Assembly (NCBI GenBank): GCA_047495785.1
Contig: JBLDXI010000002.1
Span: 868,001 to 932,000 of the forward strand
Reading direction: 5' to 3'
Origin: Lepidodermella squamata
Taxonomy: Eukaryota > Animalia > Gastrotricha
DNA length: 64,000 nt
The notes under the pieces are model-generated. The model saw nothing but the letters and a program-made list of their open reading frames with translations. It did not search any database and was not told where the DNA came from. Both the position numbers and the translations under genes were made by a program. This document shows positions 1,653 to 56,406 of the stretch, one piece after another (positions within the stretch are counted from its first letter, which is position 1; every line of letters starts with the position of its first letter).

Positions 1653-3348
1653 AGTAAGTGTAAGCTGTGTAAATGTGAAAACATGAATAGTGGAGCTGTG
1701 GTATGACGCCGATACTGTATACCTATTTGTTAAAACCTGACGCAATACGTATGATTCATCTGGCATGAAAATATCACTGCGCGAATGACTCATCTTGCGT
1801 TGGTAGAAGGGCTTAAGAATATGTATCTAAATTGTGCGTTGGAGACTAGAATGATATAGCTGTAGGCTGTCAAGCTGATGTAGAAATTTTATTGTAAAAG
1901 CAGCATCTATGAATTTAAATTCTATATGCGAACTATGAAAGTTGTCAAGATGCGCCAATGTCAAACATGAATCACAATCGGTAAAATAAGCGTGTAAGCG
2001 TAAGCGTAAGTCATTCATTACTTGAAGTAACAAAACATTGATTAGAGCTGAACCTTATCTATCAATACTCAATACTTTTACAGGTGGGAAGATGCTATTA
2101 CTCTGGCAATTTCTTCAATCGATTCTATTTTCGACTACGCTCACGAGATGTTGGCGTGATCTCTCCTCACTTTCATTAATAAGTCAAACAGTCGCCGGAA
2201 CCCCAAGTTATCAAGTTAGAGTTAGCTAACTCTATAAACGCTTTACATTTATACTTTTCGCTTTTCGAATCCGGAAGGTTCGCTGAATTATTTATATGGT
2301 TCAAAGAATGCATGTAATCACACCAGTCCAAAAGAGAATTCCGTAAACCACCAGCGGCCAGACATCAATATTCAAATTCTCAATGTGACTCGCAATGTGG
2401 ACGGCTCCGTTTCAGGATTTATCGACCCGAATCATGAGACGTACTATAGCACGCCGCGGCTACGAAGCTTCCGTAATATTTCCTCGAAAAAATAATGAGC
2501 TAGAAGTGCGTAGAACTTCCAAGTTAGGAATCCGACATCTTTATCGGTAAGAGCTCGTGAGACGGCTGGTTTCAGGGAACATTCAATGCCTGGTGAGTTT
2601 TCGAGGCGTAATTCGAGGCTGATTCCAATGGGTCATAGGAAACCCGGTAGATGGTAATTAGGCCTAACGGAAAAACGTTAACAGCCAAAATGGCGATCGT
2701 CCTTAGTTTTGGCAAGTGAATCCTCGCTCTCATCCTGAATCTTCTCAATAAATAAACCCATCAATTCAAAGAATTTGGACTTGCTAGTATTTTCAGGCAC
2801 GCGCCGCTATTCATGGAAAAAACTGTGAATGAAGACATTTTGTTCGAAAAATTCAATAATTCACTCCTTCTGAACCTTTACCGAATGCATTTTTATCCTC
2901 CACTAACGTTTACAGCGTGCCTCATAGGTAACGCAAGCAAACAAAATATACGGAAAAGGGTTCAGAAAATTTAAAATTAAGTCACATCTTATGACCAGAA
3001 AAATGTAAGAAAATTTAATTAAAAATTAAAAAAAATCAAGAGAATAGTAATATATGAATTATGCAGATTGGCAAAACGCATTTCTTGCACAACTTTTCAA
3101 GGTGGATCTGTTTGAAACAAGCTCTTATGCAAAAATCAGACCATACCTTCTCTTACTTTGCTAAAACCGCGTCTTTGCATCACTTACGGTTGAATAGTTA
3201 TTTAATAAAGCAATGCTAAACAGTTACGCACACTTTATTCTCATCGCTCTCTAACAACAGCATTTGACTATTGAACCAACTTTTGGTGCACAACTTTTGG
3301 TGGTTTTCTTTGATTTTAACCTGCCATCGAGGTGCATGTCGGACAAAA

Positions 3349-4113
3349 CTAATCCACCATCTGCAGTTCATCCGACGTGTACCTTTCGACGTTCGAACCA
3401 GAAACGGTCCAGTTCTGACGCACAAATCCAGAATTCTTCCAATAAAATAGTGCCATTAACACGCATCTCTTTTCAACTTCTGACATTTCCTTCTGATCAT
3501 CGTGGAAACCGTCTGCGCGTGTGTTAAGCGATACCGAATTCCAGACAAGTTTGTTGTTTTGAAACGAGAAACCAGCACCCACGATTTGATCGTCGAGTTC
3601 AACGCCGAACAACGACTTGTAAAGTTTCCCATGAATTTGACCCTCTGCGGCGTCGATGGACATAATCGATGACGATTTCCTCAAATAAATATAACCAGCC
3701 TTACAGTGAACGCCGTTCAAACGCCAATCTGTTTGACCGTTGTACATGAGCAGCATCATTCCGGCATAGTTTTCGCCCAATAATAAGTTGTCTGATTTAC
3801 AGGAAACGTGAAACGTGTCGACAGCAATTTCAATTCCAGGTTTCGGTGGCCCTTTTGAGATGAAAACAGCACAACCGTCACGGAAGAACGCCGAGGGAAT
3901 TCCACCACTAAATAGTCGCAGCACTGAGTCCAGTGTACTCTTCTCTTGGATGTTGTATTGTGCCAACGTCAGATCGTCTTCGAGTTGTTTCCCAGCGAAG
4001 ATTAATCTTTGCTCGTCGGCTGGTATAAGCTGTTTGACCTTGCCGATTGTGTACGACGGTTCAACTTCCAACGTCAACGTCTTCCCTGTGAGAAGTTTAA
4101 CAAAAAGTTTCAT
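3349..4113 (-). CDS. Ubiquitin-like domain fused to an unrecognised ~180 aa domain, copy A
   Basis: N-terminus [20 protein letters not shown]...[12 protein letters not shown]...YNIQEKSTL is ubiquitin-like. It has an 18-nt in-frame deletion (VLYEDG) versus copy B, and the junction is LRLFSG-G rather than LRLRGG. The frame stays open through the C-terminal domain. Confidence 0.85.
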
Positions 4114-13972: not shown

Positions 13973-15019
13973 CTATCGCTTCTTGAGCACCACAAATGCG
14001 TTGTCCCAAGTCAGCGACATATCCTCCGCTCGGCGATTATCCCGAGCCAGAACCTTTTTGTAATGGCCCCACAGCCTCGAACAAATTGCCGCTTTTTCAT
14101 CTGCTGTCCTCTCATTGGAAAGAGCTGCTAGAAACGAAGGCTCGCAGCACGGTTCCAAAATCGACGCGAGATCTGTTATAAAACGATCGTAATCGCGATG
14201 TTTTTCATAAGCTTCGTAAAAGACGCTTTTCGGGGTCGGGCAAAGCTCGGCTGTAACTACTTCCAAGCCAAGGGGTTCCAAAATATCAGTTTTCGTAATA
14301 TCCTCAAGTGTCCGAAACACTAAATGCATAGTAAAGTCTTCCAGTTCTTCGCTGGTGATAAACCCAGAAATTTCGAGCTCTTTCGCTGCTTTGTAGAGGC
14401 CATCGAACAATCGATCTGAAGTATAACCTCCTGTTATTACATTCAGAATCAACACACCTCCTTTTCTTAGTTCCTTCGATCTCGACCCGAGGAAACTTCT
14501 CCAATCTTCCTCTGCCTGTTTATGCCAAAGAGCCTTCTCTTCATCACTAGCCATTGGGGTGTAAATGTGGCTTTTTAGCTTGCACGGAGCGCCGGAAGAC
14601 CAATGTAGGGAACTGCTTGAAAAACCGACCTGTAAGCAGTCATCCGGTAAAATTTGCTGGTAGAACGAGAAACCAGCAGCTAAGCACTGAACTCCAGCGT
14701 GTCTCTTCACGTAGGACTTACTATCCTGGCGTATGAAGTTGAAAAATTCAGACCAGTTACTTTCAGGCAGGTCTTCGTGTATGGAAAAAATTGATTTCGT
14801 AGCTTCAAAACCGTATTTATCGCGAATTGCGGTGATGATCTCAGAAACGGCAGCTGAGCTATTAGCCCCAGTGCTGCTGCCGAAGTCTGCGATGATCAGG
14901 GGATGCGTCAACTCGGCCGAGTGAGCGTCGATTCCTTTTTTCACAAAGATTCGAGCGATGTCCAGAGTTTGACGCTGGCCCTTGGAGAGCAGATTGTAGT
15001 CGGATCGCATGGCAGACAT
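13973..15019 (-). CDS. SAM-dependent carboxyl methyltransferase, SABATH family (Methyltransf_7-like), intronless
   Basis: SABATH motifs: M..DYNLLSKGQ, IADFGSSTGANS, HEDLPESNWSEFF, GFSFYQQILP, FSSSSLHWSS, QAEEDWRSFLGSRSKELRKGG. First ATG is at 15019; the track start at 15046 is TTG. Confidence 0.9.
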   Translation of the reverse strand: MSAMRSDYNLLSKGQRQTLDIARIFVKKGIDAHSAELTHPLIIADFGSSTGANSSAAVSEIITAIRDKYGFEATKSIFSIHEDLPESNWSEFFNFIRQDSKSYVKRHAGVQCLAAGFSFYQQILPDDCLQVGFSSSSLHWSSGAPCKLKSHIYTPMASDEEKALWHKQAEEDWRSFLGSRSKELRKGGVLILNVITGGYTSDRLFDGLYKAAKELEISGFITSEELEDFTMHLVFRTLEDITKTDILEPLGLEVVTAELCPTPKSVFYEAYEKHRDYDRFITDLASILEPCCEPSFLAALSNERTADEKAAICSRLWGHYKKVLARDNRRAEDMSLTWDNAFVVLKKR

Positions 15020-16029
15020 TGCTTTGTCGTAATTTGAAAAATGCAAGGTATTTTGGCTGTTCGCGCTACACCTAGCCTGTACTTATAGCTGGTTTCATCT
15101 ATCCGAAATGGGGGCACCTTTTTTACCCTTAATAATAGCAACCATCACGAGATTCATTCGCGTTGGAAGAAACTCGCCTACGACCTTCGTCAATGTCTAC
15201 ATAATCACATGATATTGAACAATTTTTATAACTGGAAAACGACAGTGCTTGGCGAAAGGTTCGTGTTATAACAATTTAGACAATAAAATAAACAAAAGCT
15301 GTAATGGCGTAGGATTCTGAAGTACTTTTTCAATTTGTTAAGCGTAATGCACGAAGAACCCCTTTTGCTAACATCAAGGAATCTTCCCGGTGAGACTTAA
15401 AAGCTTGAAAAAAGCTGAGCGCAGTACCCACACACAATGTTTACAATAACCGAACGGTATGCAGACCATATTCACAGCTTTCAGTGGGATTTGACCAATT
15501 TCTCATAGGATAGAGAATTTCCAGAATTGAGAGCCGATTTGCCGACACGGAGAAAGCTTGAATAATGCCGAATGCATAGATTTGACAGTGTTGGAAACTT
15601 GTGGACGGTATATAACACAGATTTTCCCTTACACTTTTTAGCTAAAATTTTTCACTAGCTATTATCCTCCATTTATCACTGACAAAATGTTCACATGAGA
15701 GGAAATCTTGAAATTCGTTGTTATGCCCAGTCGCGATCAACCTAATTAAGTAGCTGGGCAGAAATCAGAAATAGTACGAAAGCAAAAATTCATCAGTTAA
15801 CTGCAATATTTATTTACGCGATGGCGACAGGGACTAACAAAAGAAACGATTGATTCCATGATTGCAATAAGAAAAGTTTGACTTTTCCAGCCATCATTGA
15901 GTATCAATAATAAAAAGGATTATGATTTATAAATTAACGAAACGAATAAAAACAACTCGGGCGAAAGCACATAATACAAGTCTCTTCCCTTGTAATGGAA
16001 TAAAACAGAGCAGCCATCGCTCAAATTAT

Positions 16030-17112
16030 TCAAGCCTGCTCGTAGGCGGCTTCACCGCGCTTGGCCTCTTCATAGGCAGCTTCACCACGTTTAGCCTCTT
16101 CGTAGGCAGCTTCACCACGTTTGGCCTCTTCATAGGCAGCTTCACCACGTTTGGCCTCTTCGTAGGCAGCTTCACCGCGCTTGGCCTCCTCGTAGGCGGC
16201 TTCGCCGCGTTTGGCCTCTTCGTAGGCAGCTTCACCACGTTTGGCTTCCTCATAGGCAGCTTCACCGCGCTTGGCCTCTTCATAGGCAGCTTCACCACGT
16301 TTGGCCTCTTCGTAGGCAGCTTCACCACGTTTGGCTTCCTCATAGGCAGCTTCACCGCGCTTGGCCTCTTCGTAGGCAGCTTCACCACGTTTGGCCTCTT
16401 CGTAGGCAGCTTCACCACGTTTGGCCTCTTCGTAGGCAGCTTCACCACGTTTGGCTTCCTCATAGGCAGCTTCACCGCGCTTGGCCTCTTCGTAGGCAGC
16501 TTCACCACGTTTGGCCTCTTCGTAGGCAGCTTCACCGCGCTTGGCCTCCTCGTAGGCGGCTTCGCCGCGTTTGGCCTCTTCGTAGCCAGCTTCCCCGCGC
16601 TTGGCTTCTTCGTAACCAGCTTCACCGCGCTTTGCCTCTTCGTAGCCAGCTTCACCGCGCTTGGCTTCCTCGTAGGCGGCTTCACCACGCTTGGCTTCCT
16701 CGTAACCAGCTTCCCTGCGCTTTGCCTCTTCGTAGCCAGCTTCACCGCGCTTGGCTTCCTCGTAAGCAGCTTCACGGCGCTTGGCTTCCTCGTAGGCGGC
16801 TTCACCACGCTTGGCTTCCTCGTAACCAGCTTCCCCGCGCTTGGCTTCTTCGTAGCCAGCTTCACCGCGCTTTGCCTCTTCGTAGCCAGCTTCACCGCGC
16901 TTGGCTTCCTCGTAGGCGGCTTCACCACGCTTGGCTTCCTCGTAACCAGCTTCCTTGCGCTTTGCCTCTTCGTAGCCAGCTTCACCGCGCTTGGCTTCCT
17001 CGTAGGCAGCTTCACCACGTTTGGCCTCGTCGTAGGCAGCTTCACCACGCTTGGCCTCTTCGTAGCCAGCTTCCCCGCGCTTGGCTTCTTCGTAGGCGCT
17101 CTCACGCCTCAT
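16030..17112. repeat. 30-bp coding minisatellite with local 90-120 bp higher-order blocks
   Basis: Direct inspection. Variation is mostly at third positions of the EEAKRGEAAY frame. Confidence 0.95.
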
Positions 17113-17247
17113 GGTCTCCCCAAGCGGATTCGAAAGGACCGCTGCTACCTAGTTTCAAAACAAATGTGTCATGCCATTAGTTATATGATATGCACATCGG
17201 TTGCAGAAACTCACCAGGCATGCTGCTATCGTTAGCTTGCAGATCAT
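16030..17247 (-). CDS. Secreted repeat-peptide precursor 1 (2 exons: 17247-17215, 17148-16030; 383 aa; 36 decapeptide units)
   Basis: Exon 1 MICKLTIAACL, a GTGAGT...CTAG phase-0 intron, then exon 2 VAAVLSNPLGETMRRESAYEEA-(KR-GEA[A/G]YEEA)n. The intron position is conserved in four paralogues, and splicing creates a hydrophobic signal peptide. Confidence 0.88.
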
Positions 17248-17353
17248 AATTCGGCTTGAATAAAATGGCTGATAAAATATTCGAAAAAGGAAATTGCTTT
17301 TGATGAAACGTTGGTATTCAATGAAGATTGAAATTTTCACCTTTCAGCTATGG

Positions 17354-17360
17354 TTTTATA
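17354..17360 (-). promoter_or_regulatory. Candidate TATA box of precursor 1
   Basis: TATAAAA ~110 nt upstream of the ATG, also present upstream of the 27902 paralogue; it is CAATAAAA in the 25774 copy. Confidence 0.35.
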
Positions 17361-18149
17361 GGCGAGCGATCGTTAGTTGCGCTAGATGAATTGTCTATTA
17401 TGCTTGCGATCCAGGGTTGCCGTTAGTCATGGCACTTCTCCAAGCAAGTTCAGCTGTCCTTTCCCTCTCACGTGTCAGCCGCAAAAAACCTATTTTAGCA
17501 TCATAAAATTAACAATAATATTTGAATAATTATGAATAGAATATAATCGCGTATTATTTTCTTTAGCGATGAAATTTTATTCCACACCGGCATTTTCATT
17601 TGTCGTTAATTCAACTAGGCTGACATCCCCTTCTATGAAAGCTTCCTTTCGCAAAGCTGATTTTCCCTGCAGGATTGCATTCAGAGATCTTTCATTTTTA
17701 CCGATCGCTGTCATTTCATTTCAATTCCAATAATTTGTAAAACGTCGCGTTCCGACGCAAAAATGATCCATTGTTATTGGCGCGGCCAATAGTTTCATGT
17801 CGAAGTGGGTTACCGGAATCTTCATGACAAGTCAAATCGAGGCCGCCGAACAAGATTCCGAAGTCAAAATCACTCCATCATCAGCTTCGGAAAATATCGA
17901 TATGTCTAAATCGATACCGATCGATATCAAAATCAATAAATTTCTTATTTGGGGGAATTTTCTAACCAATATCTTTATATATTTCACAGGGTTGAAATCC
18001 CTATTTCCAAACGAAGAAACCTTTTTTCAGCAGCAGATTTCTTTTTTCAGCAGCAGAATACTTTTTTCTGCAGCAGATACTTTTCCCAGCAGCAGATACT
18101 TTATTCAGCAGCAGATTATACTTTTTCAGCAGCAAATTTCAAAATATCG

Positions 18150-18804
18150 ATTTTCATTAAAAAAAATGTAACCATTTTGATAGACACGTTTTCATGAGTT
18201 CAATAATACATAAGTTCCCATATGAAATGGGCAGCATTAGATGAACACGTGCTGTTTACAAAATAAGCGCACGCGACTGGCTATTTTCACAACTGTTCGT
18301 TTGAAATATTTATGTGATTCAAGCACAAAGTTTAAATCAAATTGATTATGAGAGAACTACTGTTGTCATCGCCTTCTACCATAAAAAGCTCCCCTGATCA
18401 ATCCGACGTGGAGACTTCGGCCCGGGTGCGAGGAAAGGCGGTAGTCTATGTCTACTCAGAAAACCGGTTCCCCGACTGGGCGACGGCATCGGCTAGTTGA
18501 ATGCCCTTTGATTGAAATCTTGCCCTTGAAAAGCGGTAAAGGCCGTAAAAAGACTATATCCTTGTTTTACACGGGTGCACACTACATGGCCCTAGGCCGC
18601 TGAATTTTTCTTGATAGAACAGACTGAATTAACTGACTTTCCATTCTCGGATGTTAAATCTAACAAGAGTAATGACGAGTATATGGAAATAAATCATTTT
18701 AGGCGCGGTTGCTGCTTATAACGAAATATGTAACGAAATATGTATACATATTTGAACTCAGGAAAGCGTGTCTATCAAAATGGTTAAATTTTTTTAATGA
18801 AAAT
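18150..18804. mobile_element. Nested inverted-repeat element inside the left MULE TIR
   Basis: ~50 bp imperfect TIRs: ATTTTCATTAAAAAAAATGTAACCATTTTGATAGACACG... / ...CGTGTCTATCAAAATGGTTAAATTTTTTTAATGAAAAT. Confidence 0.65.
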
Positions 18805-19097
18805 GGACCATAGTTTTTTCGTCAGCAATATCCTTCTTTTCGCAGCAAAATCCTTTTTCTCACAGCAATTTTTTTTTTCGCGAGGAACATCTTTTATTTG
18901 CAGCACATCCAGTTTTATTTCAGGAGAAAAGAAAAAAAAATTGCAAGTTGAAATTGAAATTAACCACGCGATTCAGCGTCGCGTGTATAGTTAGCATCAT
19001 CACATGTCAGTAGCATTGTCAGTAAATTATTGCTAAATTATTCGGAAAAAATGTCAGCTTTTTCTGAAATGAACATTTCCCAATTTTCCACGTCACC

Positions 19098-20822
19098 CTA
19101 TTTCCCCAGGGCCATGTAGTGATTGTTGCAAAAAAAAACATGGTATGTTGGCTCAGCGGCGTAACTAGGTCTACCAAACTGATGGGGCCAGCCTTGGGGC
19201 CAGCACATCTTTTCTACGTATTTGCGGCCCCGAATTTTTCAGACCACAGGGTCCCCCCTGTTGTACCCTGAGAGTATTTTTCCAGCTGGTGGGGCCGGTG
19301 CCCCCCCCCCCTGGCCCCCCCTTAGTTACGCCCCTGTGTTGGCTTCCGCCCGGCACCGCGATGGCCGACGGGCCTGATGACGTAAGGGACAGATTCCATT
19401 TGATGGACCTCAATATTGATATTACGGCTCACTGCGATTGCTGTAAGGGCCTCCTCCCCGCCCCAGTAGCCTAGTTCCGACAGGCGTAGAACTGCAAATA
19501 AAGTTAATCAAGTTTTGCACACATGAAACGCGACGCAAATTAATTTACCAAATTCCAAATAATCTTCCAAGCCGTAGGGCGTATTCTCCTTGTCACCCGG
19601 GTGAATCCCGGCGAAGTAAGGCATCACCAATTCAGCGTTGTCGGTGAGCCAGTCTACCGCCTCAGCCCCCAGCAATGCATGGTCGTCCTCCGAACCGTGG
19701 AGGAGTAGTGCCATCGCACGGAAGGCACAGTTCCCGTCACCCAGAACATCGTGCACGGCGAATCGGTCGTATCGGTCACCGTCACGAGGGCAACCGTCAC
19801 CAGCAGGCGGAGACTTCTGAACTTGTTTGCGATTCTTTTTGGATTTAATCGGCGAAGGTTCCGGAGAAAGCAGTGAAGATTCGGTGGACGTAGCAGATGA
19901 ACGACCTGCCTTTCTGCGCAAAGCTCGACGCTTACGAGTCTTCGCTTTTGATTTGATCGGCGAAGGTTCAGGAGAATGTAGCGACGATTCGTTCGACGTA
20001 ACAGGTGACCGAGCTGCCTTGCTGCGCTTACGAGACTTCGGTTTCTCGAGACCGTTATGTTCTGTCAAGAAACAGCCTGAAATTGCCATCTTTTTCTTCG
20101 TTTTTCTTGACTTCTTCGCCTACTGACTCAACAGCTTCGCCTTCTTTCTCTTCGACAGCTTCGTCATCATATCCGCCTTCATCATTGCAATCTTCAGCCG
20201 AATCCGAATCAAATTTAAGCGCCTTAGATGCCTTTTTCGGCCGGCCGCACGAGGCACCACCAAGAGAGGCAGCTCGATGCTCACTCGGAATTGCTTCCAA
20301 CCCGGTGACATGTCGCACCATAACAGAGTGAACGCAATGCGGTTTTTTGGAGCCGTGGAAGCAGGTGCAGGTTGTGCCAGTCTCTGTGTTGTGAACCAGA
20401 AAGACGTTGGAAATCGACCATTTGTAGGCGTCATAGCATCTCCAGTTGCTTTCTTGTCGATTTGTGACGCAGCGATCTAGCGAATCGGTTTCGACATGAC
20501 AACTGGTGACGACGTAGAAGTCCCCATCGACATTGAAAACCTTCATGTGCGGCTTCTTTTTTATTGGATTTTCTTGGCAACACTTTGCAAGTTTCAGGTT
20601 TATCCAGGCACGCCGGTACAAGGTGGCGGGAACTGGGTGACCTTCAGCGAACTGCGGCGATTCCGTCGATTCTCCACCCAGTTGTCGAAGCAACTTGCCC
20701 AGAAGGTTGGCAATTTGAGCTTCAACGCAGTACGGCTCGTCAAGATTGGTCGGTAACTCCGAATGTGCTTCAACCCATTCTTTCAGCTGTAATGTGTTCA
20801 TAGTGGAGACATTTTCAGCCAC
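19098..20822 (-). pseudogene. MULE-derived gene: transposase N-terminal remnant + SWIM zinc finger + OTU-family cysteine protease; disrupted
   Basis: SWIM CTCFHGSKKPHCVH. OTU: VLGDGNCAFRAMA, then after an intron (~19492-19548) YWGGEEALTAIAVSRNINIEVH...HVFFCNNHYMAL*. There is a frame break near 20055-20089 and a MITE in the last exon; no DDE core seen. Confidence 0.75.
19154..19336. mobile_element. hAT-type MITE (183 bp) with 8-bp TSD
   Basis: TIRs CAGCGGCGTAACTA / TAGTTACGCCCCTG; TSD TGTTGGCT at 19146-19153 and 19337-19344. Removing it restores the OTU reading frame. Confidence 0.9.
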
Positions 20823-21316
20823 ACCAGCCGCACTTGCCGCGCTTGCTTGCCCAGCAGCTTTAATTTGTAGTAGTAAGCAGATCTACTTTTTTAATTTGTT
20901 TTTTTCCACGTGCCCATACTTTTCAACCTTTTTAAGGTGTTGTTACGACTAAACACGCGACGCTGAATCGCGTGGTTAATTTCAATTTCAACTTGCAATT
21001 TTTTTTCTTTTCTCCTGAAATAAAACGGGATGTGCTGCAAATAAAAGATGTTCCTCGCGAAAAAAAAAATTGCTGTGAGAAAAAGGATTTTGCTGCGAAA
21101 AGAAGGAATTTGCTGACGGTTAAAGTATAATTCATGAAAATCGATATTTTAAAATTTGCTGCTGAAAAAAGTATCTGCTGCTGGGAAAAGTATCTGCTGC
21201 AGAAAACAGTATTCTGCTGCTGAAAAAAGAAATCTGCTGCAGAAAAAAGAGCTATCCTTCCAAACGTCGGAAAAGTGAAGAAGTCGGAGAAGTCGATAGC
21301 ACAAGATCGTTTTATT

Positions 21317-22477
21317 TCATCGAGTTTGTTTCATCCTAGATAAAAGTTCTGGGGACTGGTATCCCATTTGAAACTTCAAATAGTTGCGCAAGGCTAATGG
21401 TAGGTAAGGTTTCAGTCCTTCGTCGATAGCCGTCATTCGACTGACGTAACCTATCGGTAAGCTATTGAGCACAGCCATGCGGGCCATGAATTGCAACCGC
21501 ATTGGAAAGACAAGGTGAGCCGAAGATCTCGCCAGTTCATGTATCTCCCGGATCTCATGACTCTCGAACTTCTTGTACGATGAGTCGCGCTTTGTCGAAA
21601 GTAAAACATCGATTAAGTCGACCTCATAGTCGTAAATCGGGAGGCGATTCGCAGCAGCAGTTGCTAGCCTGGCTACTGCGACAAGTTGATAATACGAGTG
21701 AGAAGTTCGGCAACCTGCTAGGACCATCGACTTGATAAAAGTGACTACTCTTGGGTCATCTTCGCCCTCGGGAATCGCGCTGATTCGACTCGAAACCCAA
21801 TCAAGAGGCGATTCCAAACAAGCGGATCTCACAGCTTCTTCTGATAAACGCGCGAGGCATTCCGTTTTAGGGCTAATGACTAGCCAAGATGCCGTATCGA
21901 GCTCGCCACTATGAACCATCCTCGTCAAAGTGTGATCACCCCCAAGCTTGACGAGCTGGTCACTGTTTTCGAGGTCCAACAGCTTCATTATGAGATCGCG
22001 TCTTCCTTCGGTGCAGGCGTATGTCAAAATTGTGTGGCCGCGTTCCTTTTCCAGCAGATTAGCTCCATTTTTGATTAGTGTCATCAATCCATCGTCGCAG
22101 CAGGAACAGCGAAAAGCCTGGCATAAGGAGCCAATGACGCCGAGTTCGATCAGCTCTTCTGCGAAAATTGTATTACAATCGGCAAACGCCTTTTTTAAAT
22201 ACGACTGTAGCAATTCGGTCTTCAATAGCCCGTAATCGATTCTCAATATTCTGCTGAGTTTGGAGTAGCTGGAATTGATGTGGCCATACTGCAAGTTACG
22301 TAGAACTCTTCTGATACCACGGCGTCTCACCGAGCGAGGGAACAAAAAGTAGTGATGAGTGAGTTCGTAGTCGGTCTTGCATTTGTCGAAAATAGCTAGA
22401 AATCTGCTGGTTTGGCGATGATCTTCATTTCGATCCTCCTTTGCTTCGACGGTCGCAAAATCAAAATCAAAATCCAT
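21317..22477 (-). CDS. Ankyrin-repeat/SOCS-box (ASB-like) protein, copy B, intact, intronless
   Basis: Ankyrin-like RGHTILTYACTEGRRDLIMKLL and GGDHTLTRMVHSGELDTASWLV; C-terminal SOCS-box-like segment ending LPLALRNYL. Likely start MDFDFDF at 22477; the frame is open upstream to 22615. Confidence 0.75.
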   Translation of the reverse strand: MDFDFDFATVEAKEDRNEDHRQTSRFLAIFDKCKTDYELTHHYFLFPRSVRRRGIRRVLRNLQYGHINSSYSKLSRILRIDYGLLKTELLQSYLKKAFADCNTIFAEELIELGVIGSLCQAFRCSCCDDGLMTLIKNGANLLEKERGHTILTYACTEGRRDLIMKLLDLENSDQLVKLGGDHTLTRMVHSGELDTASWLVISPKTECLARLSEEAVRSACLESPLDWVSSRISAIPEGEDDPRVVTFIKSMVLAGCRTSHSYYQLVAVARLATAAANRLPIYDYEVDLIDVLLSTKRDSSYKKFESHEIREIHELARSSAHLVFPMRLQFMARMAVLNSLPIGYVSRMTAIDEGLKPYLPLALRNYLKFQMGYQSPELLSRMKQTR

Positions 22478-22694
22478 AGTTAAGTGTAAGCTGTGCAAGT
22501 GATAACATGAATAGTAGAGTTGTGGTATTGGGGCGTGTGGTGTATACTTTTTTGCTGAAAACTGACGCAATACGTGAGCAGGCATGGTATGATTCATCTT
22601 GCAGGAAAACATCAATGTGCATGACTCATCTTGCGTTGGTAGAAAGGCTTACGAATATCTAAATTATGCGTTGGCTCTAAATTATCTAAATTAA

Positions 22695-23420
22695 GGCTCG
22701 CAGCACGGTTCCAAAATCGACGCGAGATCTGTCATAAACCGATCGCAATCGCCATGTGTTTCATGAGCTTCGTAAAAGACACTTTTTGCATACTTTTTGG
22801 GGTCGAGCAAAGCTCGGCTTCAAAATATCAGTATTTGTGATGTCCTCAAGCGTCCTAAACACTAAATAACTCGACTCGATTGCTTGAAAAACCGACCTGT
22901 CCGGCAGAATTTGTTGATAGAACGAGAATCCAGCTGGTAGACACTGAACTCCAGCGTGTCTCTTTACGTAGGACTTCCTATCCTGGTGCATGAAGTTGAA
23001 AAATTCAGACCAGTTACTTTCAGGCAGGTCTTCGTGTATGGAAAAAATTGATTTCGTAGCTTCAAAACCGTATTTATCGCGAATTGCGGTGATGATCTCA
23101 GAAACGGCAGCTGAGCTATTAGCCCCAGTGCTGCTGCCGAAGTCTGCGATGATCAGGGGATGCGTCAACTCGGCCGAGTGAGCGTCGATTCCGTATGAAG
23201 TTGAAAAGTTCAGACCAGTTATTTATACAGGTCTTCATGTATGGAATAAATTCATTTCGTTGCTTCAAAGCCGTATTTTTCGCGAATTGCGGTATTATTT
23301 TAGAAACGGCAGCTGAACTGTAGCCACCGTGCTGCTGCCGAAGTCGGCGATGACCAGTGGATGGGCAAATTCGCCTGAGTGGGCGTCGATTCCTTTTTTA
23401 GCCAAGGTTCGAGCTATATT
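22695..23420 (-). pseudogene. Rearranged SABATH methyltransferase pseudogene
   Basis: Fragments match 13973-15019 (IIADFGSSTGANSS..HEDLPESNW) with internal deletions, plus a second diverged 5' fragment at ~23193-23420. Confidence 0.85.
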
Positions 23421-23507
23421 CGAGCACTAGGCGCCTCCTTTGATGACATCAAGGAATCTTTCCGGTAAGATTGGAAATTTGAATAAGCTGAGCTGCAAAC
23501 TGATAGT

Positions 23508-23554
23508 ACCAGCACCATAGACAATAATGTTACATCATTGTCTATGACCAGCAC
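23508..23554. mobile_element. Transposon excision footprint: 31-bp hairpin between 8-bp direct repeats (P-element-like)
   Basis: ACCAGCAC-CATAGACAATAATGT-T-ACATCATTGTCTATG-ACCAGCAC; absent at the paralogous site near 15425. Confidence 0.65.
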
Positions 23555-24195
23555 ACAATTTTTACGATAGCCTCTGGAAACTGGAAACCGAACAGTTTAC
23601 AGGCAACCATACCGAATTCGAATTACACTGCTTTCACTTTGATTTTAACATCAAGTTCTCACATGGGATTTACGATTCCCAGAGTTGAGAGTCGATTTGA
23701 CAACATGGAGAAAGCTCGAATAATAATGCCGATTGCTTGGAACATTGAATTGGACAAAGATGGAAACTTTTGGATAATATATAGCGAAAGGCGAAAGGTT
23801 TCCATACAATTTTTGATGAGCTATTACTATCCATCTACCACTGGCAAAATTTTCAAATAGGAGGAAAATCTTGAAACTCGCTGGGTCCTTCGCTTTCAGT
23901 CCAGTTTTATTGCCAGGTTGCCGTAAACAAAATTAGTCCGAAAGCGAAACTTTATCATTTAACTGGATTATTTATTCATACGGTAAGGCGGTAGTAATGA
24001 AGAAGCGATCAATTCTATGATTGCGAGGAGAAAAGTTAGACTTTTTCCAGCCATCATTGAGTATGAAATATAAAAAGCTTATGCTTTATGAGAGGAATTA
24101 GGGTGAAAGGAATAAAAACAACACGGGCGAAAGCACATAATACAAGTCTCTTCCCTTGTAATGGAATAAAACAGAGCAGCCATCGCTCAAATTAT

Positions 24196-25774
24196 TCAAG
24201 CCTGCTCATAGGCGGCTTCACCACGTTTGGCCTCCTCGTAGCCAGCTTCACCGCGCTGAGCCTCTTCGTAGCCAGCTTCACCACGTTTGGCCTCTTCGTA
24301 GCCAGCTTCCCCGCGCTTGGCTTCTTCGTAGGCGGCTTCACCACGCTTGGCCTCTTCGTAGCCAGCTTCCCCGCGCTTGGCTTCTTCGTAGCCAGCTTCC
24401 CCGCGCTTGGCTTCTTCGTAACCAGCTTCCCTGCGCTTTGCCTCTTCGTAGGCAGCTTCACCACGTTTGGCCTCTTCGTAGCCAGCTTCCCCGCGCTTGG
24501 CTTCTTCGTAACCAGCTTCCCTGCGCTTTGCCTCTTCGTAGGCGGCTTCACCACGCTTGGCCTCTTCGTAACCAGCTTCCCTGCGCTTTGCCTCTTCGTA
24601 GCCAGCTTCCCCGCGCTTGGCTTCTTCGTAACCAGCTTCCCTGCGCTTTGCCTCTTCGTAGGCGGCTTCACCACGCTTGGCCTCTTCGTAGCCAGCTTCC
24701 CCGCGCTTGGCTTCTTCGTAACCAGCTTCCCTGCGCTTTGCCTCTTCGTAGGCGGCTTCACCACGCTTAGCCTCTTCGTAGCCAGCTTCCCTGCGCTTTG
24801 CTTCCTCATAGGCAGCTTCACCGCGCTTGGCCTCTTCGTAGCCAGCTTCCCCGCGCTTGGCTTCTTCGTAACCAGCTTCCCTGCGCTTTGCCTCTTCGTA
24901 GGCGGCTTCACCACGCTTGGCCTCTTCGTAGCCAGCGTCCCTTCGCTTTGCCTCTTCGTAGGCGGCTTCACCGCGCTTGGCCTCCTCGTAGCCAGCTTCA
25001 CCACGCTTTGCCTCTTCGTAGCCAGCTTCCCTGCGCTTTGCCTCTTCGTAGGCGGCTTCACCACGCTTGGCCTCTTCGTAGCCAGCTTCCCCGCGCTTGG
25101 CTTCTTCGTAACCAGCTTCCCTGCGCTTTGCCTCTTCGTAGGCGGCTTCACCACGCTTAGCCTCTTCGTAGCCAGCTTCCCTGCGCTTTGCTTCCTCATT
25201 GGCAGCTTCACCGCGCTTGGCCTCTTCGTAGCCAGCTTCCCCGCGCTTGGCTTCTTCGTAACCAGCTTCCCTGCGCTTTGCCTCTTCGTAGGCGGCTTCA
25301 CCACGCTTGGCCTCTTCGTAGCCAGCGTCCCTTCGCTTTGCCTCTTCGTAGGCGGCTTCACCGCGCTTGGCCTCCTCGTAGCCAGCTTCACCACGCTTTG
25401 CCTCTTCGTAGCCAGCTTCCCTGCGCTTTGCCTCTTCGTAGGCGGCTTCACCACGCTTGGCCTCCTCGTAGCCAGCTTCACCACGCTTTGCCTCCTCGTA
25501 GCCAGCTTCCCTGCGCTTTGCCTCTTCGTAGGCGGCTTCACCGCGCTTGGCTTCCTCGTAGCCAGCTTCACCGCGCTTTGCCTCCTCGTAGCCAGCTTCA
25601 CCGCGCTTGGCCTCTTCGTAGGCGCTCTCACGCCTCATGGTCTCCCCGAGCGGATTCGAAAGGACCGCTGCTATCTATTTTCAAAACAAAATCATCATTG
25701 CCGTTAGTTAAAAGATATGCTTGTCAATCGCAAAAACTCACAAGGCATGCTGCTATCGTTAGCTTGCTGATCAT
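24196..25774 (-). CDS. Secreted repeat-peptide precursor 2 (exons 25774-25742, 25674-24196; 503 aa; 48 units)
   Basis: MISKLTIAACL | GTGAGT..ATAG | IAAVLSNPLGETMRRESAYEEA-(KR-[G/R]EA[A/G]YEEA)n, ending YEQA*. Confidence 0.88.
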
Positions 25775-27564
25775 TTTCGGCTTGAATTTAAGGGCTGATG
25801 GAATATTCGAAAAAGGAAATAGCTTTTGATGAAATGTTGGATTTGTATGAAGATTGAAATTTTCACTTTTTCCGCTACGGTTTTATTGGCGAGCGATGGC
25901 GTTCATTTCATCAGTTGCGCTAGATGAATTGTCTATTATGCTTGCGATCCAGGGTGCCGTGAGCCATGGCACCGCTCCAAGCAAGTTCAGCTGTCATTTC
26001 CTTTTCACGTGCCAGCCGCAAAAAACTTTTTTTAACATCATAAATTAACAATAATATTTGAACAATTATGAATAGAATATGATCGCGCTTTATTTTTTTC
26101 AGCGACGAAATTTCATTCCACACCGACATTGTCATTTGCCGGTAATTCAATAACCAGCCATTCACTTCTCCGAATAACTCCTTACGCAAAGCTGATTTTT
26201 CTTTCATGTTTACAGTCAGAATTCTTTCATTTCTACCGATCGCTGTCATTTCATTTCAATTCCAATAATTTGTAAAACGTCGCGTTCCGACGCAAAAATG
26301 ATCCATTGTTATAGGCCGGGCCAATAGTTTCAAGTCGATCAAATCGAAAATTGAGATTTTTAAGTTACGAACACGCCTTTTCACGCTAGTTAATTTAGAT
26401 TTTCACGATGGGAAATCAATGCACAGTTGAAAGGTCTCAAGTCCATGGCATAAGTATACAGCTTATACATAATAGGACTTTTTGACGCTTGGTTCACCCT
26501 TTAGACTTTGGCTGAAATTACGTAGACGTTAAATTGTCTCTTTGAGCTGAATTGACGATATCTGATAGGACGCCCAAAAACCAAGACCTCCGGTTCCTGA
26601 TTCTGAGCGCGAGTTTAGTTTACTCCAAATTTAGGCATAAATCAAGGAAAAATTGCACGAACTTAAAGAACCCGTTCAGAATTCTGTGCCTTCAGATTTT
26701 TCCCAAAGATTGACGTAGCTGGTAAAGCAGCAAAACTTCAAATGAGGTAGCAAATAGGACGGGGAGCGTGGACGTGATTTGCGACGATACGGTATGCTTG
26801 TTTTCATTCGTGAAAATCAATTTCCGATCACAGCCGCTCAGGGGGCGGGTGTCGTCATGTCGACTTCGGCGCAGAATTGCTGCATCAGGTTTCGCATGAG
26901 GTATCATTTCCCGCAGCCCCTCAGCAACACGTACGCCATCATGCTCTTAGAAAGCATCTCGCCATTCCGACCTGGGCCCATCGCTCCAAGTGGAACCATC
27001 ATCGGCGGGGTTGCAATAGGTGCAGGCTTGATCATATACAGGCGGAAGGTACTGATTTTTTATCCTGATTCAGTTAAATTCGAGATCCATCGAGTGTGTT
27101 TGGTGACAGATGCAGACATTTGGCAGATTACATTTGGCAATTGAACGGGATTTTGAGCATCGCAGGTGAGGTCTCGATGCAAAATCAACACAAAAACGTG
27201 AAATGGAGCTCGCAATTGCACGCAGTTTCCGATACTATGTAGGATTCAGGTTATCCCCAAACTAGCATAAATTTTTGGCTAACCGGAGACGAAGAATGTT
27301 CGATTTTAAAATGGCTAGAAACTTGGTTTTTGGTGAAAAACTGAGGATCCAAATTAAAACCTTCGCCGGAGGAAAGCAGTAGAACACGTTTCACTTCGTT
27401 AATTAGCTGCGATGTGGCTCCATTAATATTTATTCACGCAGCAAGGCGGTTGTAATAGCTTGAAGAAGCGATTAATTACATGAATACATCAATTGCAATA
27501 AGAGTTTTTCCAGCAGTTCTTGAGATAGTAAAATGAGACGATTTTGATTTTTGAGATCAATCGA

Positions 27565-27902
27565 TTAAACTACAAAGTTAGTATTGACAAAAGCAGTCAC
27601 CTCAGACAGAATACTATTTTTCACACTAGCTGATAATTGGGAAAAGCTTTCCCCACGCTTCGCCTCCGGGTAGTTTTCTACAACGCGCTCGGCTTCCTGG
27701 TAGTTGTCCCCGCCACGTTGGGCTTCTTGGTAGTTGGCTCCCTGATATTGGCTCTCGCGCATCATGCTCTCCGTGATTGGATACGAAATGACGGCTGCTA
27801 CCTATTTCAAAAAAGCATTCATCATCGCAGCGTTATCTGATTATGTGTTCATCAATTGCAGAAACTAACCAAGCAGGCTGCTATCATTAGCTTGTAGATC
27901 AT
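27565..27902 (-). CDS. Short precursor paralogue 3 (exons 27902-27870, 27801-27565; 89 aa)
   Basis: MIYKLMIAACL | GTTAGT..ATAG | VAAVISYPITESMMRESQYQGANYQEAQRGGDNYQEAERVVENYPEAKRGESFSQLSASVKNSILSEVTAFVNTNFVV*. Confidence 0.82.
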
Positions 27903-28402
27903 CTCCCGGCTTTAAATAAAAGGGCTGATAAAATATTAGAAAAAAAATTCCTTTAATGAAATTAGATGTGATGAATGAAGATTATCTCAATATGCAGCCA
28001 CGTTTTATAGGCTAACGATCGCGTTTATTTCAGTAGTTTTGCCATATGACTTTCATGATCCCTTGCTTGCGATCCAGGTTGCCGTTATAATGATCGCACC
28101 GCTCCAAGTAAGTTCAGCTGTCGTTTCTTCTCGCGTGTAAGTTCAACTCCCTTATTCTCACAAAGTTTTTTTTGTTTTTCGCTGTCACTTGGGGTCAAAT
28201 TTTTAGGTAAAATGATTTTTTGGGACAATTGGCTTGTAACTGATACCCTGCATTATATTATCGATAGCTCAAAGATTGCAGAATCCAGCGAATCGAGTTC
28301 AAATCTCGATGTGACCATGGTTACTTTTTTGGCCTGTAAGCATCGATGCGGATCGTGGCGGAAAGCATCAACTAGTCGGAACTGGATATTCAAGTCAGCC
28401 TA

Positions 28403-39200: not shown

Positions 39201-41546
39201 ATGATCATGCTGCTAAATTTCATTTTCACAATTGCGACATTTATCGGGGTTTCCCGGGGTGGAGGAAAGAAGTATAACTTGAATCTATTGAGCCTTCTTC
39301 CGGCTAACTACCCAACATGTGCAGTTGCATACCAAGTAGTAGTCGACCGCGTCAACAGTCGCCACGATGTTCTTACCGATTATCACATTGTACTGGATCT
39401 AAAAGACCAGAACGGCAACAACGCAGCAGGATCCAATCAAGCTGTTGTGTCATTCGACGACAAAGTCCTTGGCGAGAATAACTACAGCGCTCCGATAATT
39501 CTTGGACCTAGTGGCTCTTGCAACGTCGTTGCACCAACAATGAAAGCTTTGTATTACACTGAAGTATCTCTGGGCTGTACTGGAGCCTATATCTACTCCA
39601 GGAAGTCTTTCTTCAACAACCTTTTCCCTGTATCTATGTGGACTGTGCTTCAAAATTACGCTATCAAAGGGGTGATTGATATAGGAGGTTGGCGCCAAGT
39701 CGGCTTGATTGCGACCTCTTCAAGTGCTAACGCCATAATAACGGCCCATGAACTTCACGCTTATCTTACTGGGCAAGGAGTTGATGTCGTCCAGTACGTC
39801 AGTGAACCTGACCTCAGCTACACCGGTATCGAATCGTTCAAGTCGAAGGCTACGATCATCGTGGTTTTCCTGATATTTGCCGATGACACAGTCAGATTCT
39901 TTTGTCTAGCGCATTCGGCTGGGCTTCGACCGCCACTTTACAACTTCATCATCTACGCTTCGGTTCAAGCTATGTATACGGCTATTAATGCCATCAAAAA
40001 CCCTCCCCCGAACTGTGATGGAGCTGGGATCGAACTCATGCTTACAGGGAGTCTTTTCCTCGGTATCTCATTTGTTCCAACTGGCAATTATTCAACCGCG
40101 CTTGGCTACGATAATGCGGAATTCGAAGCTGAGATGACACAGCGGCTTACAAATGTTCCGAACTACGGGTTGGACTTTTCCGAACGATTCAGATGTCATG
40201 ACGCCATTTTGTCATCAATTCACATTCTAAACAAATCTGAAGCGATTTTGCAACGGCAGTATAACATGTCGCTGCGGGACTTCAAAAATCACCGTGACCT
40301 TGTCCGAAATGTAGTCAACTCTAGTGCGGCTAAAAGCGACTTTGTGGGCTTGCGAATCGGTCGAATTAATCCAGACGTAAACAATAACATCCTTGAAGAG
40401 CTGCAAATCTACCAGGTTATTGACCGCCAGCCTGTTCTTAACTACAAAATGTTTTACAATCGAGAAAAAGCTGGGAACCTCAGCAGTTTCCCGTACGATG
40501 TTGTTAAAATTGCTGACGTGGTTTGGCCTACTAAGAAAAATCAGCCACCGAAAGATTTGTCTTCAATTGAACATCGAAAGTCAGTATGTGGCTCGAAGCT
40601 GATCGGTGCTGTTGTTGCTCTAGCTTCAGGAATCTCTATCACCCAAGTTACGGTGTTCGTCATAAAAATCCGTAAACCGAACGCAGATATGCTTTACAGA
40701 AACACTGAAAAAGTTGCGAGTCTACTGGCCTGTGTGCTTCTGAACATGGCAGGTGTTGTCCACGTAGTTGGTTGGGATTATTTTACTGAGGTAGGATGCC
40801 TCACTCGGCCAGTCCTTCTTGTTGTGGCATTATCTTACATTCACGGGCTGATAACAGCGAAGCTTCATGGTTTATCTGAGTTTGCTCGAAGTTATACTTC
40901 GGCGCGAGGCGTGTATGCCAGAAAATTTAACTCAGCTTCATTAGCTCGAATTCGAAATAGCGATGAACCACCCCAGGTCAAATCAATGTCCCCTTCGCAA
41001 TCAGCAGCGTTTCTAGGGGTAAAGAAGAACTCGTCAATAAAAAGCTGGAATTTCATGCCAAATGAAATAACGTCACTGTCCAAACGAACCCTAACTCTCG
41101 CGATATTCCTGGCCATCTTAAGCAGTCTTACCATGATTCTCTGGGTTGTCATCCACCCTTCAAAAGTAGTTAAACTCCGCACTGAGCTGGCTTTTGACGA
41201 GCAGGAAGTGGTATTTTACGACATAGAGATCGCCAGATGTGAATCTGAATTCGAAGCTTACTGGTTAGGGGCTTTGTTAGGCTTGCATCTTGCAATGCTT
41301 TTCTCAGCTAACTTCTGGTCATTCGGCCTGCGACAGTTTGCTTTGCCAAACGAATTAGCCTCCGGAGCAAAGGCGATGCGACTGGCAGCAGTAAATTCGA
41401 TTTCAACGATGTGCGCTGTCTTTCTGACCTTACTAGCCGTGCGTTCATCTATGAATCACTGTGTGGCTTTCACAGTTTTGTCGATCGGAGAACTTGTTTA
41501 TTCTGGGTCGACTTCAATGATCCTTTTATTTATGATTTCAAACTGA
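39201..41546 (+). CDS. Class C GPCR, GABA-B-receptor-like (Venus flytrap + 7TM), intronless
   Basis: Signal peptide; VFT-like VNSRHDVLTDYHI and ILGPSGS; no Cys-rich domain; TM3 CLTRPVLL...AKL, TM4 ending WVVIHP, ECL2 Cys (ARCES); seven hydrophobic segments. Confidence 0.8.
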   Translation: MIMLLNFIFTIATFIGVSRGGGKKYNLNLLSLLPANYPTCAVAYQVVVDRVNSRHDVLTDYHIVLDLKDQNGNNAAGSNQAVVSFDDKVLGENNYSAPIILGPSGSCNVVAPTMKALYYTEVSLGCTGAYIYSRKSFFNNLFPVSMWTVLQNYAIKGVIDIGGWRQVGLIATSSSANAIITAHELHAYLTGQGVDVVQYVSEPDLSYTGIESFKSKATIIVVFLIFADDTVRFFCLAHSAGLRPPLYNFIIYASVQAMYTAINAIKNPPPNCDGAGIELMLTGSLFLGISFVPTGNYSTALGYDNAEFEAEMTQRLTNVPNYGLDFSERFRCHDAILSSIHILNKSEAILQRQYNMSLRDFKNHRDLVRNVVNSSAAKSDFVGLRIGRINPDVNNNILEELQIYQVIDRQPVLNYKMFYNREKAGNLSSFPYDVVKIADVVWPTKKNQPPKDLSSIEHRKSVCGSKLIGAVVALASGISITQVTVFVIKIRKPNADMLYRNTEKVASLLACVLLNMAGVVHVVGWDYFTEVGCLTRPVLLVVALSYIHGLITAKLHGLSEFARSYTSARGVYARKFNSASLARIRNSDEPPQVKSMSPSQSAAFLGVKKNSSIKSWNFMPNEITSLSKRTLTLAIFLAILSSLTMILWVVIHPSKVVKLRTELAFDEQEVVFYDIEIARCESEFEAYWLGALLGLHLAMLFSANFWSFGLRQFALPNELASGAKAMRLAAVNSISTMCAVFLTLLAVRSSMNHCVAFTVLSIGELVYSGSTSMILLFMISN

Positions 41547-56107: not shown

Positions 56108-56406
56108 ATGATCTACAAGCTAATGATAGCAGCCTGCTTGGTTAGTCTCTGCAATCGATCAACATAATAACGGATAAAACAGTAATGATAAATGCTTTTT
56201 TGAAATAGGTAGCAGCCGTCATTTCGTATCCACTCACGGAGAGCATGAGGCGCGAGAGCCAATACCACGAAGCCAACTACCACGAAGCCCAAAGTGGCGG
56301 GGGCAATTACCAGGACGCTAAGCCACGGGGAAGCATTTCCTCAGCTAATACGAAAAATGCTATCAAGTCTGCAGTGACTCAGTTTGTCCAGCAAAACTTT
56401 GTTTAA
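56108..56406 (+). CDS. Short precursor paralogue 4 (exons 56108-56140, 56209-56406; 76 aa); not in the ORF track
   Basis: MIYKLMIAACL | GTTAGT..ATAG | VAAVISYPLTESMRRESQYHEANYHEAQSGGGNYQDAKPRGSISSANTKNAIKSAVTQFVQQNFV*. Flanks are homologous (inverted) to 27350-28200. Confidence 0.82.

Follow-up and report, generated by a model that had tools for sequence, protein, structure and literature searches.

Two genes on the minus strand of the DNA analysed here, a window of 64,000 nt (positions 868,001-932,000, forward strand, of Lepidodermella squamata contig JBLDXI010000002.1), encode proteins in which a predicted signal peptide is followed by a long array of KR-GEA[A/G]YEEA ten-residue units. The genes are real, spliced and transcribed. 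The favoured reading, to which we give about an even chance, is that they encode polyproteins that would be processed at dibasic sites to release bulk amounts of acidic tyrosine octapeptides, possibly sulfated. Gene finders see only a satellite here, and a heavily transcribed, predicted secreted product is left unannotated.

Two spliced and transcribed array genes

The arrays are seen as the minus-strand open reading frames (ORFs) 16030-17112 and 24196-25638. Tandem Repeats Finder gives a period of 30 with 35.5 copies at 16040-17105 for copy 1, and the same period with 47 unit-equivalents at 24215-25621 for copy 2, where higher-order repeat periods of 60/90/150 nt are found as well. Each frame can be joined to a short upstream exon. 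The features of the two genes, all on the minus strand, are listed below; RNA-like contigs are those of the read run X1 described further down.

16030-17247, minus: copy 1 gene, two exons, 383 amino acids (aa), 36 peptides after exon joining
17354..17360, minus: copy 1 TATA box TATAAAA, ~107 nt 5' of the ATG, sequence read directly
17215..17247, minus: coding part of copy 1 exon 1; its 11 codons (MICKLTIAACL) begin the predicted signal peptide
17149..17214, minus: copy 1 intron, 66 nt, phase 0, GT..AG, from sequence and exon joining
16030..17148, minus: copy 1 exon 2, with the remainder of the predicted signal peptide, NPLGETM-RR, 36 Tyr octapeptides and the stop codon
15809..15814, minus: copy 1 polyadenylation signal AATAAA, ~215 nt past the stop codon
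24196-25774, minus: copy 2 gene, two exons, 503 aa, 48 peptides after exon joining
25881..25887, minus: copy 2 TATA-like box AATAAAA, ~30 nt 5' of the end of the RNA-like contig
25742..25774, minus: copy 2 exon 1, coding part (MISKLTIAACL), RNA-like contig word depth in the thousands
25675..25741, minus: copy 2 intron, 67 nt, phase 0, GT..AG, spliced joint in RNA-like contigs
24196..25674, minus: copy 2 exon 2, 48 Tyr octapeptides, from the ORF, repeat analysis and unit tally
23971..23976, minus: copy 2 polyadenylation signal AATAAA, sequence read directly

In both copies GTGAGT follows exon 1 and TAG closes the intron, after which the frame runs on into the array. The resulting proteins both start MI(C/S)KLTIAACL(V/I)AAVLS-NPLGETM-RR-ESAYEEA. 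The exon-1 ATG is the first ATG 3' of the TATA or TATA-like box, which lies ~110 nt upstream of it in both genes, and in copy 2 also the first ATG 3' of the end of the RNA-like contig. The 3' untranslated region of copy 1 is kept in copy 2. A 23-nt exon-1 pattern has four matches in the window, where shuffled sequences give an expectation of 0.00. A heuristic check of the predicted signal peptide finds Lys in the n-region, a 12-residue h-region with a mean Kyte-Doolittle hydropathy of 2.4-3.1, and V-x-S ahead of the putative cut, and the segment is kept at at least 12 loci in the genome.

Between the Tyr octapeptides of copy 1 the boundary is KR(R/K). A tally of the 46 Tyr-centred internal units of copy 2 gives 15 GEAGYEEA, 14 GEAAYEEA and 13 REAGYEEA; this copy deviates at a single QR boundary and in a single unit with a Tyr-to-Asn change. 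The initial annotation, made from the sequence alone, had placed the splice junctions at 17215/17148 and 25742/25674, and exon joining re-derived the same coordinates. The phase-0 intron that it saw at one shared position in four paralogues is found again in copies 1 and 2 and in two short paralogues, and its counts of 36 and 48 units were likewise re-obtained. It had also described KR as kept in nearly every unit with one QR exception, and this is the single exception now located in copy 2.

Transcription was studied through assembled read contigs, placed on positions 25640-28100 only, that is, the 5' end of copy 2 and the whole of one short paralogue (27565-27902). Run X1 covers only the exon-like parts and no intergenic DNA, and thus behaves as RNA, while run X2 covers almost everything and thus behaves as DNA. 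The X1 contigs contain a joint, 25674 to 25742, that skips 67 nt with the ends CT..AC (GT..AG on the minus strand) at a word depth of 633. A second joint, 27799/27868, skips 68 nt of the short paralogue at a depth of 26, and one 439-nt RNA-like contig spans this paralogue without mismatch. Since neither joint occurs in DNA run X2, the joined forms are RNA and not retrocopies. The annotated junction of copy 2 is hence confirmed exactly in the RNA-like run. For copy 1 the outcome is divided: the copy-1-type junction (..CCTG joined to GTAGCA..) is present in X1, where it shows up as loose ends and, at 25673, in "CC" joints, but this sequence is common to several paralogues and cannot be assigned to copy 1 alone. 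The X1 contigs reach 25855 and so stop ~30 nt short of the TATA-like box in copy 2. Word depth in X1 is 1,660-4,100 over the shared 5' exons compared with 26-60 over the short paralogue; it is a poor measure, as paralogues are summed, and is read here only as showing that the family is heavily transcribed.

The reading frame of the arrays carries a clear mark of selection. Among units within one array the proportion of synonymous differences (pS) is 0.29-0.51 and that of nonsynonymous differences (pN) is 0-0.055, with pN/pS ratios of 0-0.12; the value is 0.08 for copy 1, at a pS of 0.51, and 0.12 for copy 2. In the arrays of type A, to which both copies belong, 9-10 of 10 third codon positions vary compared with 1-3 first/second positions, in keeping with the synonymous variation remarked on in the initial annotation. 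An array on C19, one of the paralogous loci listed below, encodes 31 identical peptides from eight different DNA units. Amino-acid variation is confined to position 1 (G, with R in about a quarter of the units) and position 4 (A/G). The pattern shows strong purifying selection on every unit of the long arrays.

These data also bear on whether the arrays might be a non-coding satellite with accidental open frames. The 30-bp tandem periodicity fits a satellite, as does the fact that all six frames are open across the array. The variation is, however, concentrated at the third codon positions of one frame only, and this together with the low pN/pS rules out an accidental satellite ORF and fixes both strand and frame. 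A satellite would also have to carry the signal exon, intron, TATA box and poly(A) signal conserved at at least 12 loci, and to be spliced in RNA-like contigs. The satellite explanation is refuted for practical purposes.

The gene family across the genome

DNA searches of the whole 121-Mb assembly, followed by exon joining, give at least 12 family loci with well over 250 encoded units in total. The loci fall into the following types.

Type A, KR-GEA[A/G]YEEA: copies 1 and 2 and a 31-unit gene 268 nt before the window
Type B, QRR-EAGYEEA: C29 (2975.7-2976.5k), 24 units; C40 (230.1-230.7k), 9 units
Type C, KR-GE[E/D]NYQEA: C54, 29 units; C19, 32 units
Type D, short (63-89 aa): five intact loci, including the two of the window, and one copy with a broken exon 1
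Type E, signal exon more divergent (MYKLALTAFL) but intron position unchanged: C2:986-995k
Type E, mixed-payload gene: C2:992500-997500, from locus position 2549, minus

The mixed-payload gene, at C2:994.6k, has a single array in which about nine GEAAYEEA units precede four of GEENYQEA. The copy-1 region recurs identically on C135, probably a haplotig.

An alignment of the long types (A1) shows that E2, Y5, E7, A8 and R10 are invariant across all of them. In seven long arrays 200 of the 201 unit boundaries carry at least two adjacent basic residues. K9 is replaced by Q in type B, but the next residue is R in 31/31 units, so that the dibasic pair has been moved one place and not lost. Immediately ahead of the first unit, the last residues of the pro-segment are RR or KR in types A, B and E and MR in type C. 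All long arrays terminate right at A8, and none is followed by a KR. Taken as a whole, the family may be one of lineage-restricted two-exon animal genes for secreted polyproteins, an assignment with roughly as much for it as against it.

Signal peptide and three or four Tyr units are retained in the short type D paralogues, which have a variable C-terminal tail and evolve fast (pN/pS 0.55-0.8). Both of those in the window have their phase-0 intron at the same codon as copies 1 and 2.

27565..27902, minus: short paralogue, 89 aa; exon 1 27902-27870, intron 27869-27802, exon 2 27801-27565
56108..56406, plus: short paralogue, 76 aa; exon 1 56108-56140, intron 56141-56208, exon 2 56209-56406

In the first of these the shared signal peptide precedes 3-4 degenerate units of the NYQEA type, bounded by QR/ER/KR, and the protein closes with a C-terminal tail. 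A short-type paralogue at C2:862.3-862.6k, in which exon 1 is broken by a small palindromic insertion and the 3' end has been replaced, is probably a pseudogene.

Fate of the encoded proteins

The secretion, cleavage, sulfation and biological role that we infer for the array proteins follow one scheme. The 17-residue signal peptide would take the protein into the secretory pathway, where subtilisin/kexin-type convertases could cleave behind every KR, KRR or RR, leaving the basic residues to be trimmed by a carboxypeptidase. Acidic octapeptides would then result, 36 or 48 from one translation product (GEAAYEEA, GEAGYEEA and (R)EAGYEEA), and the paralogues would yield EAGYEEAQ or GEENYQEA. Calculated masses (M) of the predicted peptides are 838.3345 for GEAAYEEA, 824.3188 for GEAGYEEA, 923.3985 for REAGYEEA, 767.2973 for EAGYEEA, 797.3079 for ESAYEEA and 837.3504 for the C-terminal GEAAYEQA, with 895.3559 and 938.3617 for those of the paralogues; sulfation would add 79.957 and methylation 14.016, and an uncut protein would have 40-55 kDa. 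The single Glu-flanked tyrosine may be sulfated by an orthologue of tyrosylprotein sulfotransferase (TPST).

The genome holds the machinery for such a scheme. There are ten matches to P_proprotein, the convertase P-domain, and one to Secretogranin_V/7B2, the helper of prohormone convertase 2 (PC2). A TPST orthologue is found at C21:1457-1458k, with exons matching human TPST1/2 at 1e-21 and 1e-26. An ORF on C42, the best full-length Sulfotransfer_3 match, is not TPST-like and was set aside. Most animals can be expected to have convertase, 7B2 and TPST genes, and their presence therefore permits the mechanism without proving it. Three features of a prohormone-type precursor are found here, namely a signal peptide (by the heuristic check), cores flanked by KR/RR and processing enzymes in the genome. 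The Tyr context E-A-[A/G]-Y-E-E in a predicted secretory protein, together with a TPST gene, likewise corresponds to what is looked for in a TPST substrate.

When it comes to the nature of the product, the at least 12 loci, the well over 250 units and the high transcript contig depth make bulk secretion likelier than a classical neuropeptide; the product looks more like an exocrine signal, a defensive peptide or a matrix component. The precursor proposed in the initial annotation has gained a signal-like segment, splicing, selection, the dibasic boundaries and the convertase, 7B2 and TPST genes, but nothing that points to a neuropeptide.

Several observations speak against cleavage into peptides. 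The boundaries read E-A-K-R before G or A-Q-R-R before E and lack the P4 Arg of the furin consensus; constitutive furin would therefore cut poorly, and a PC1/3-, PC2- or kexin-like specificity would be needed in the producing cell. In the 170 units of types A and C no K9 is exchanged for R, although RR would also suit a convertase, so that selection acts on more than cleavability. AlphaFold, run on a single sequence, the first 132 residues of exon 2, predicts one helix over residues 8-131 with a pLDDT of 90-95, and sites buried in a stable helix would be poor protease substrates. The units carry no amidation signal, in agreement with the absence of Gly before KR that the initial annotation had pointed out. 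Finally, the type D boundaries (QR, ER, QS or KPR) are mostly monobasic, and the ancestral protein was probably not a multi-peptide precursor.

In the leading alternative the protein is secreted but stays uncleaved, as a highly charged Ala/Glu/Lys/Arg-rich helical rod or polyampholyte. Such a rod would present a tyrosine every 1.5 nm for cross-linking or sulfation and might have a structural, adhesive, egg-envelope, lubricant or protective role. It is a real but distinctly less probable possibility than the processed polyprotein. The continuous helix predicted by AlphaFold argues for it, and so do the one i to i+4 and two i to i+3 Glu-Lys/Arg pairs per unit read from the sequence. It would also account for selection on all ten positions and not on the basic pair alone, including the K9 that never becomes R, and for boundaries without the P4 Arg of furin sites. 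Heavy transcription and many gene copies are what a bulk material would call for.

Single-sequence AlphaFold predictions, on the other hand, routinely give helices for E/K/A-rich low-complexity sequence. Gly, which destabilises a long single helix, is kept in 106/108 units of type A and in every unit of types B and C; in type A the loss of G1 is associated with G4 (Fisher p = 5e-5, the units being non-independent owing to the higher-order repeats). A period of 10 would rotate the tyrosine by about -80 degrees per unit and thus leave no hydrophobic stripe for coiled-coil or fibre packing. A constraint on charge needs no adjacency of the basic pair, but the shift from KR-G to Q-RR in type B keeps this adjacency. 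Known ER/K single helices are, moreover, intracellular proteins. If the arrays are not cut, the product would be an unusual secreted charged helical polymer.

The processed polyprotein has a narrower and more far-reaching form, in which a dozen amplified genes would act as a factory resembling that of the fungal Kex2-processed repeat proteins (KEPs) and release acidic Tyr octapeptides by the hundreds, sulfated but not amidated, for signalling or defence. We regard this form as rather improbable. The candidates for an outward-released role would under this doubtful form be a pheromone, a kairomone or an anti-predator/anti-microbial agent, and the peptides would, if it is true, make up a class without a described counterpart in animals. 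Whatever probability is not taken up by the readings weighed in this paper falls to some explanation outside them.

Neighbourhood, homology searches and known systems

The genes next to the arrays bring in one further alternative. Two of them match Methyltransf_7, the plant-type SABATH carboxyl methyltransferases.

13973-15046, minus: Methyltransf_7, E 3e-33
22761-23168, minus: truncated second Methyltransf_7 copy

A tandem array of DUF1772/anthrone-oxygenase-like genes lies at C2:848878-859230, 9-19 kb before the window. The initial annotation had hinted at a product of the type of RiPPs (peptides made by the ribosome and modified after translation). In such an animal system the cleaved peptides would be carboxyl-methylated by the SABATH-type methyltransferase and oxidised by the DUF1772 products, in a manner resembling that of the fungal dikaritins. 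In favour of this, copy 1 has the methyltransferase gene 1 kb downstream of it and copy 2 has a fragment on its downstream side; the nine DUF1772/anthrone-oxygenase-like matches of the genome are all found just upstream of the cluster. The genome has, however, 30 Methyltransf_7 matches spread over many contigs, and none is beside the C29, C40, C54, C19, C24 or C10 loci. The methyltransferase thus adjoins a precursor in the window cluster only and not throughout the family, and the one beside copy 2 is truncated to a fragment. SABATH enzymes are known to act on small molecules. No match to UstYa/DUF3328 (PF11807) was found in the genome, in a search that matched no control genome either. A RiPP-like system is very unlikely, and the region is not read as a biosynthetic cluster, since Methyltransf_7 is absent beside the other precursor loci.

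The window also carries animal-type genes, among them a Cys-loop receptor and an ORF of the ANF_receptor type. The latter, an intronless ORF of 781 aa at 39201-41546 (+), has an ANF_receptor domain and is glutamate-receptor-like. Among the 8000 candidates scored from a collection of 5.8 billion clusters no protein matched it at E <= 1e-20, and it is either very divergent or belongs to a clade missing from the databases.

Between copies 1 and 2 there is a 3.3-kb element (17994-21256) that is probably a DNA transposon, judged from its inverted ends of 100-137 nt (93-95% complementary) and its 20-bp subterminal tandem repeats. Two minus-strand ORFs lie within it: 19508-20089, which contains an OTU-like GDGNCAFRA motif, and 20055-20822. 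Pfam gives no match to either. Further along the window are two divergently oriented GT10 fucosyltransferase genes with a near-identical layout, at 49484-50752 (-) and 53372-54700 (+), and beside them a trypsin-like ORF at 48502-49074.

Protein-homology searches with copy 1 exon 2 and with the short paralogue gave no scoring match. Ten ORFs of the window were looked up by exact match, and the protein collection contains none of them; the clade is probably missing from the protein databases, and the finding of no relative is weak evidence. A profile hidden Markov model (HMM) of seven family members, searched against 1.84 billion representatives, gave 95 matches, all of them unrelated periodic repeats, such as a mucin-like TTRPEKTYPE repeat, a pentapeptide ANLQEA repeat and a CNK-type protein. 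A scan of metagenome contigs gave 412 pattern matches, none of which was confirmed, and two look-alike metagenome ORFs (P0057 and P0010) are on short uninformative contigs. ESM Atlas searches gave no usable match, and a literature search by peptide string and precursor terms found nothing relevant to the family; the decapeptide repeat of PfCERLI2 (QTEIkNDhi) is unrelated. A bdelloid spliced-leader sequence was looked for as well and gave no match.

In Pfam the type B arrays on C29 and C40 pass the model PF25296, "Decapeptide repeat region", with 109 and 65 bits at a cut-off of 45, while copies 1 and 2, the GEENYQEA type and the short types do not match it even at E <= 1. The type B score amounts to only about 40 bits per domain over 73 positions, and sub-threshold matches are seen in 4/14 unrelated control genomes and in one NYNDA repeat protein. 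The match is provisionally treated as one between periodic low-complexity sequences. No Pfam family was found for types A, C and D; the 11-mer of LEA_4 is not matched, the period being 10 and not 11. The initial annotation had not recognised a known neuropeptide family here. Copies 1 and 2 gave no relative in the databases searched and no Pfam match; the type B paralogues pass PF25296.

Glu/Ala/Lys/Arg-rich composition and the prediction of one long helix make the arrays resemble ER/K single alpha-helix domains. They differ from these in being predicted to be secreted, in having Gly in nearly every unit and a fixed Tyr, and in their content of charged residues, which is about 50%, with only one i+4 Glu-Lys/Arg pair per unit. 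Dikaritin precursors (ustiloxin, phomopsin) likewise have KR-flanked repeated Tyr cores and a nearby methyltransferase, the latter a likeness seen in the window cluster only; no UstYa oxidase was found here, and the methyltransferase link is local and not family-wide.

With gastrin/CCK/sulfakinin and the plant peptides PSK/PSY the units share a Tyr placed among E at -3, +1 and +2 and A/G at -1, and the genome has a TPST orthologue, but there is no C-terminal RFamide/amide motif and no sequence relation. Multi-copy animal neuropeptide preprohormones, those of cnidarians among them, have the same general plan of a signal peptide and many tandem copies of a short peptide, and many peptides per transcript are predicted here as well. 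Antho-RFamide precursors contain 13-36 copies, with 36 in Renilla (PMC4346854). The units described here differ from them in being acidic, without a C-terminal Gly or spacers, and in occurring in up to 48 copies per gene at at least 12 loci; no sequence similarity is known. If the arrays are cut, one mRNA would give 36-48 near-identical acidic Tyr peptides, and the upper number exceeds the 36 of Renilla.

The closest parallel in architecture is with the fungal KEPs, whose operational definition asks for a signal peptide and for 3-4 or more internal repeats that are separated by KR/RR (PMC6339444). All of this is found in the array proteins, which also share a short pro-region and near-identical repeats with KEPs, including the alpha-factor precursor (PMC6339444, PMC7329392). 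No homology was found, and the copy number is far above the average of about five in fungal alpha-factor-type precursors. Unlike the KEPs, the arrays are in an animal genome, with genes for a Cys-loop receptor and a glutamate-receptor-like protein in the window and for 7B2 and TPST elsewhere in the assembly. Cleavage of the arrays would thus mean that the logic of the fungal KEPs has been brought into an animal.

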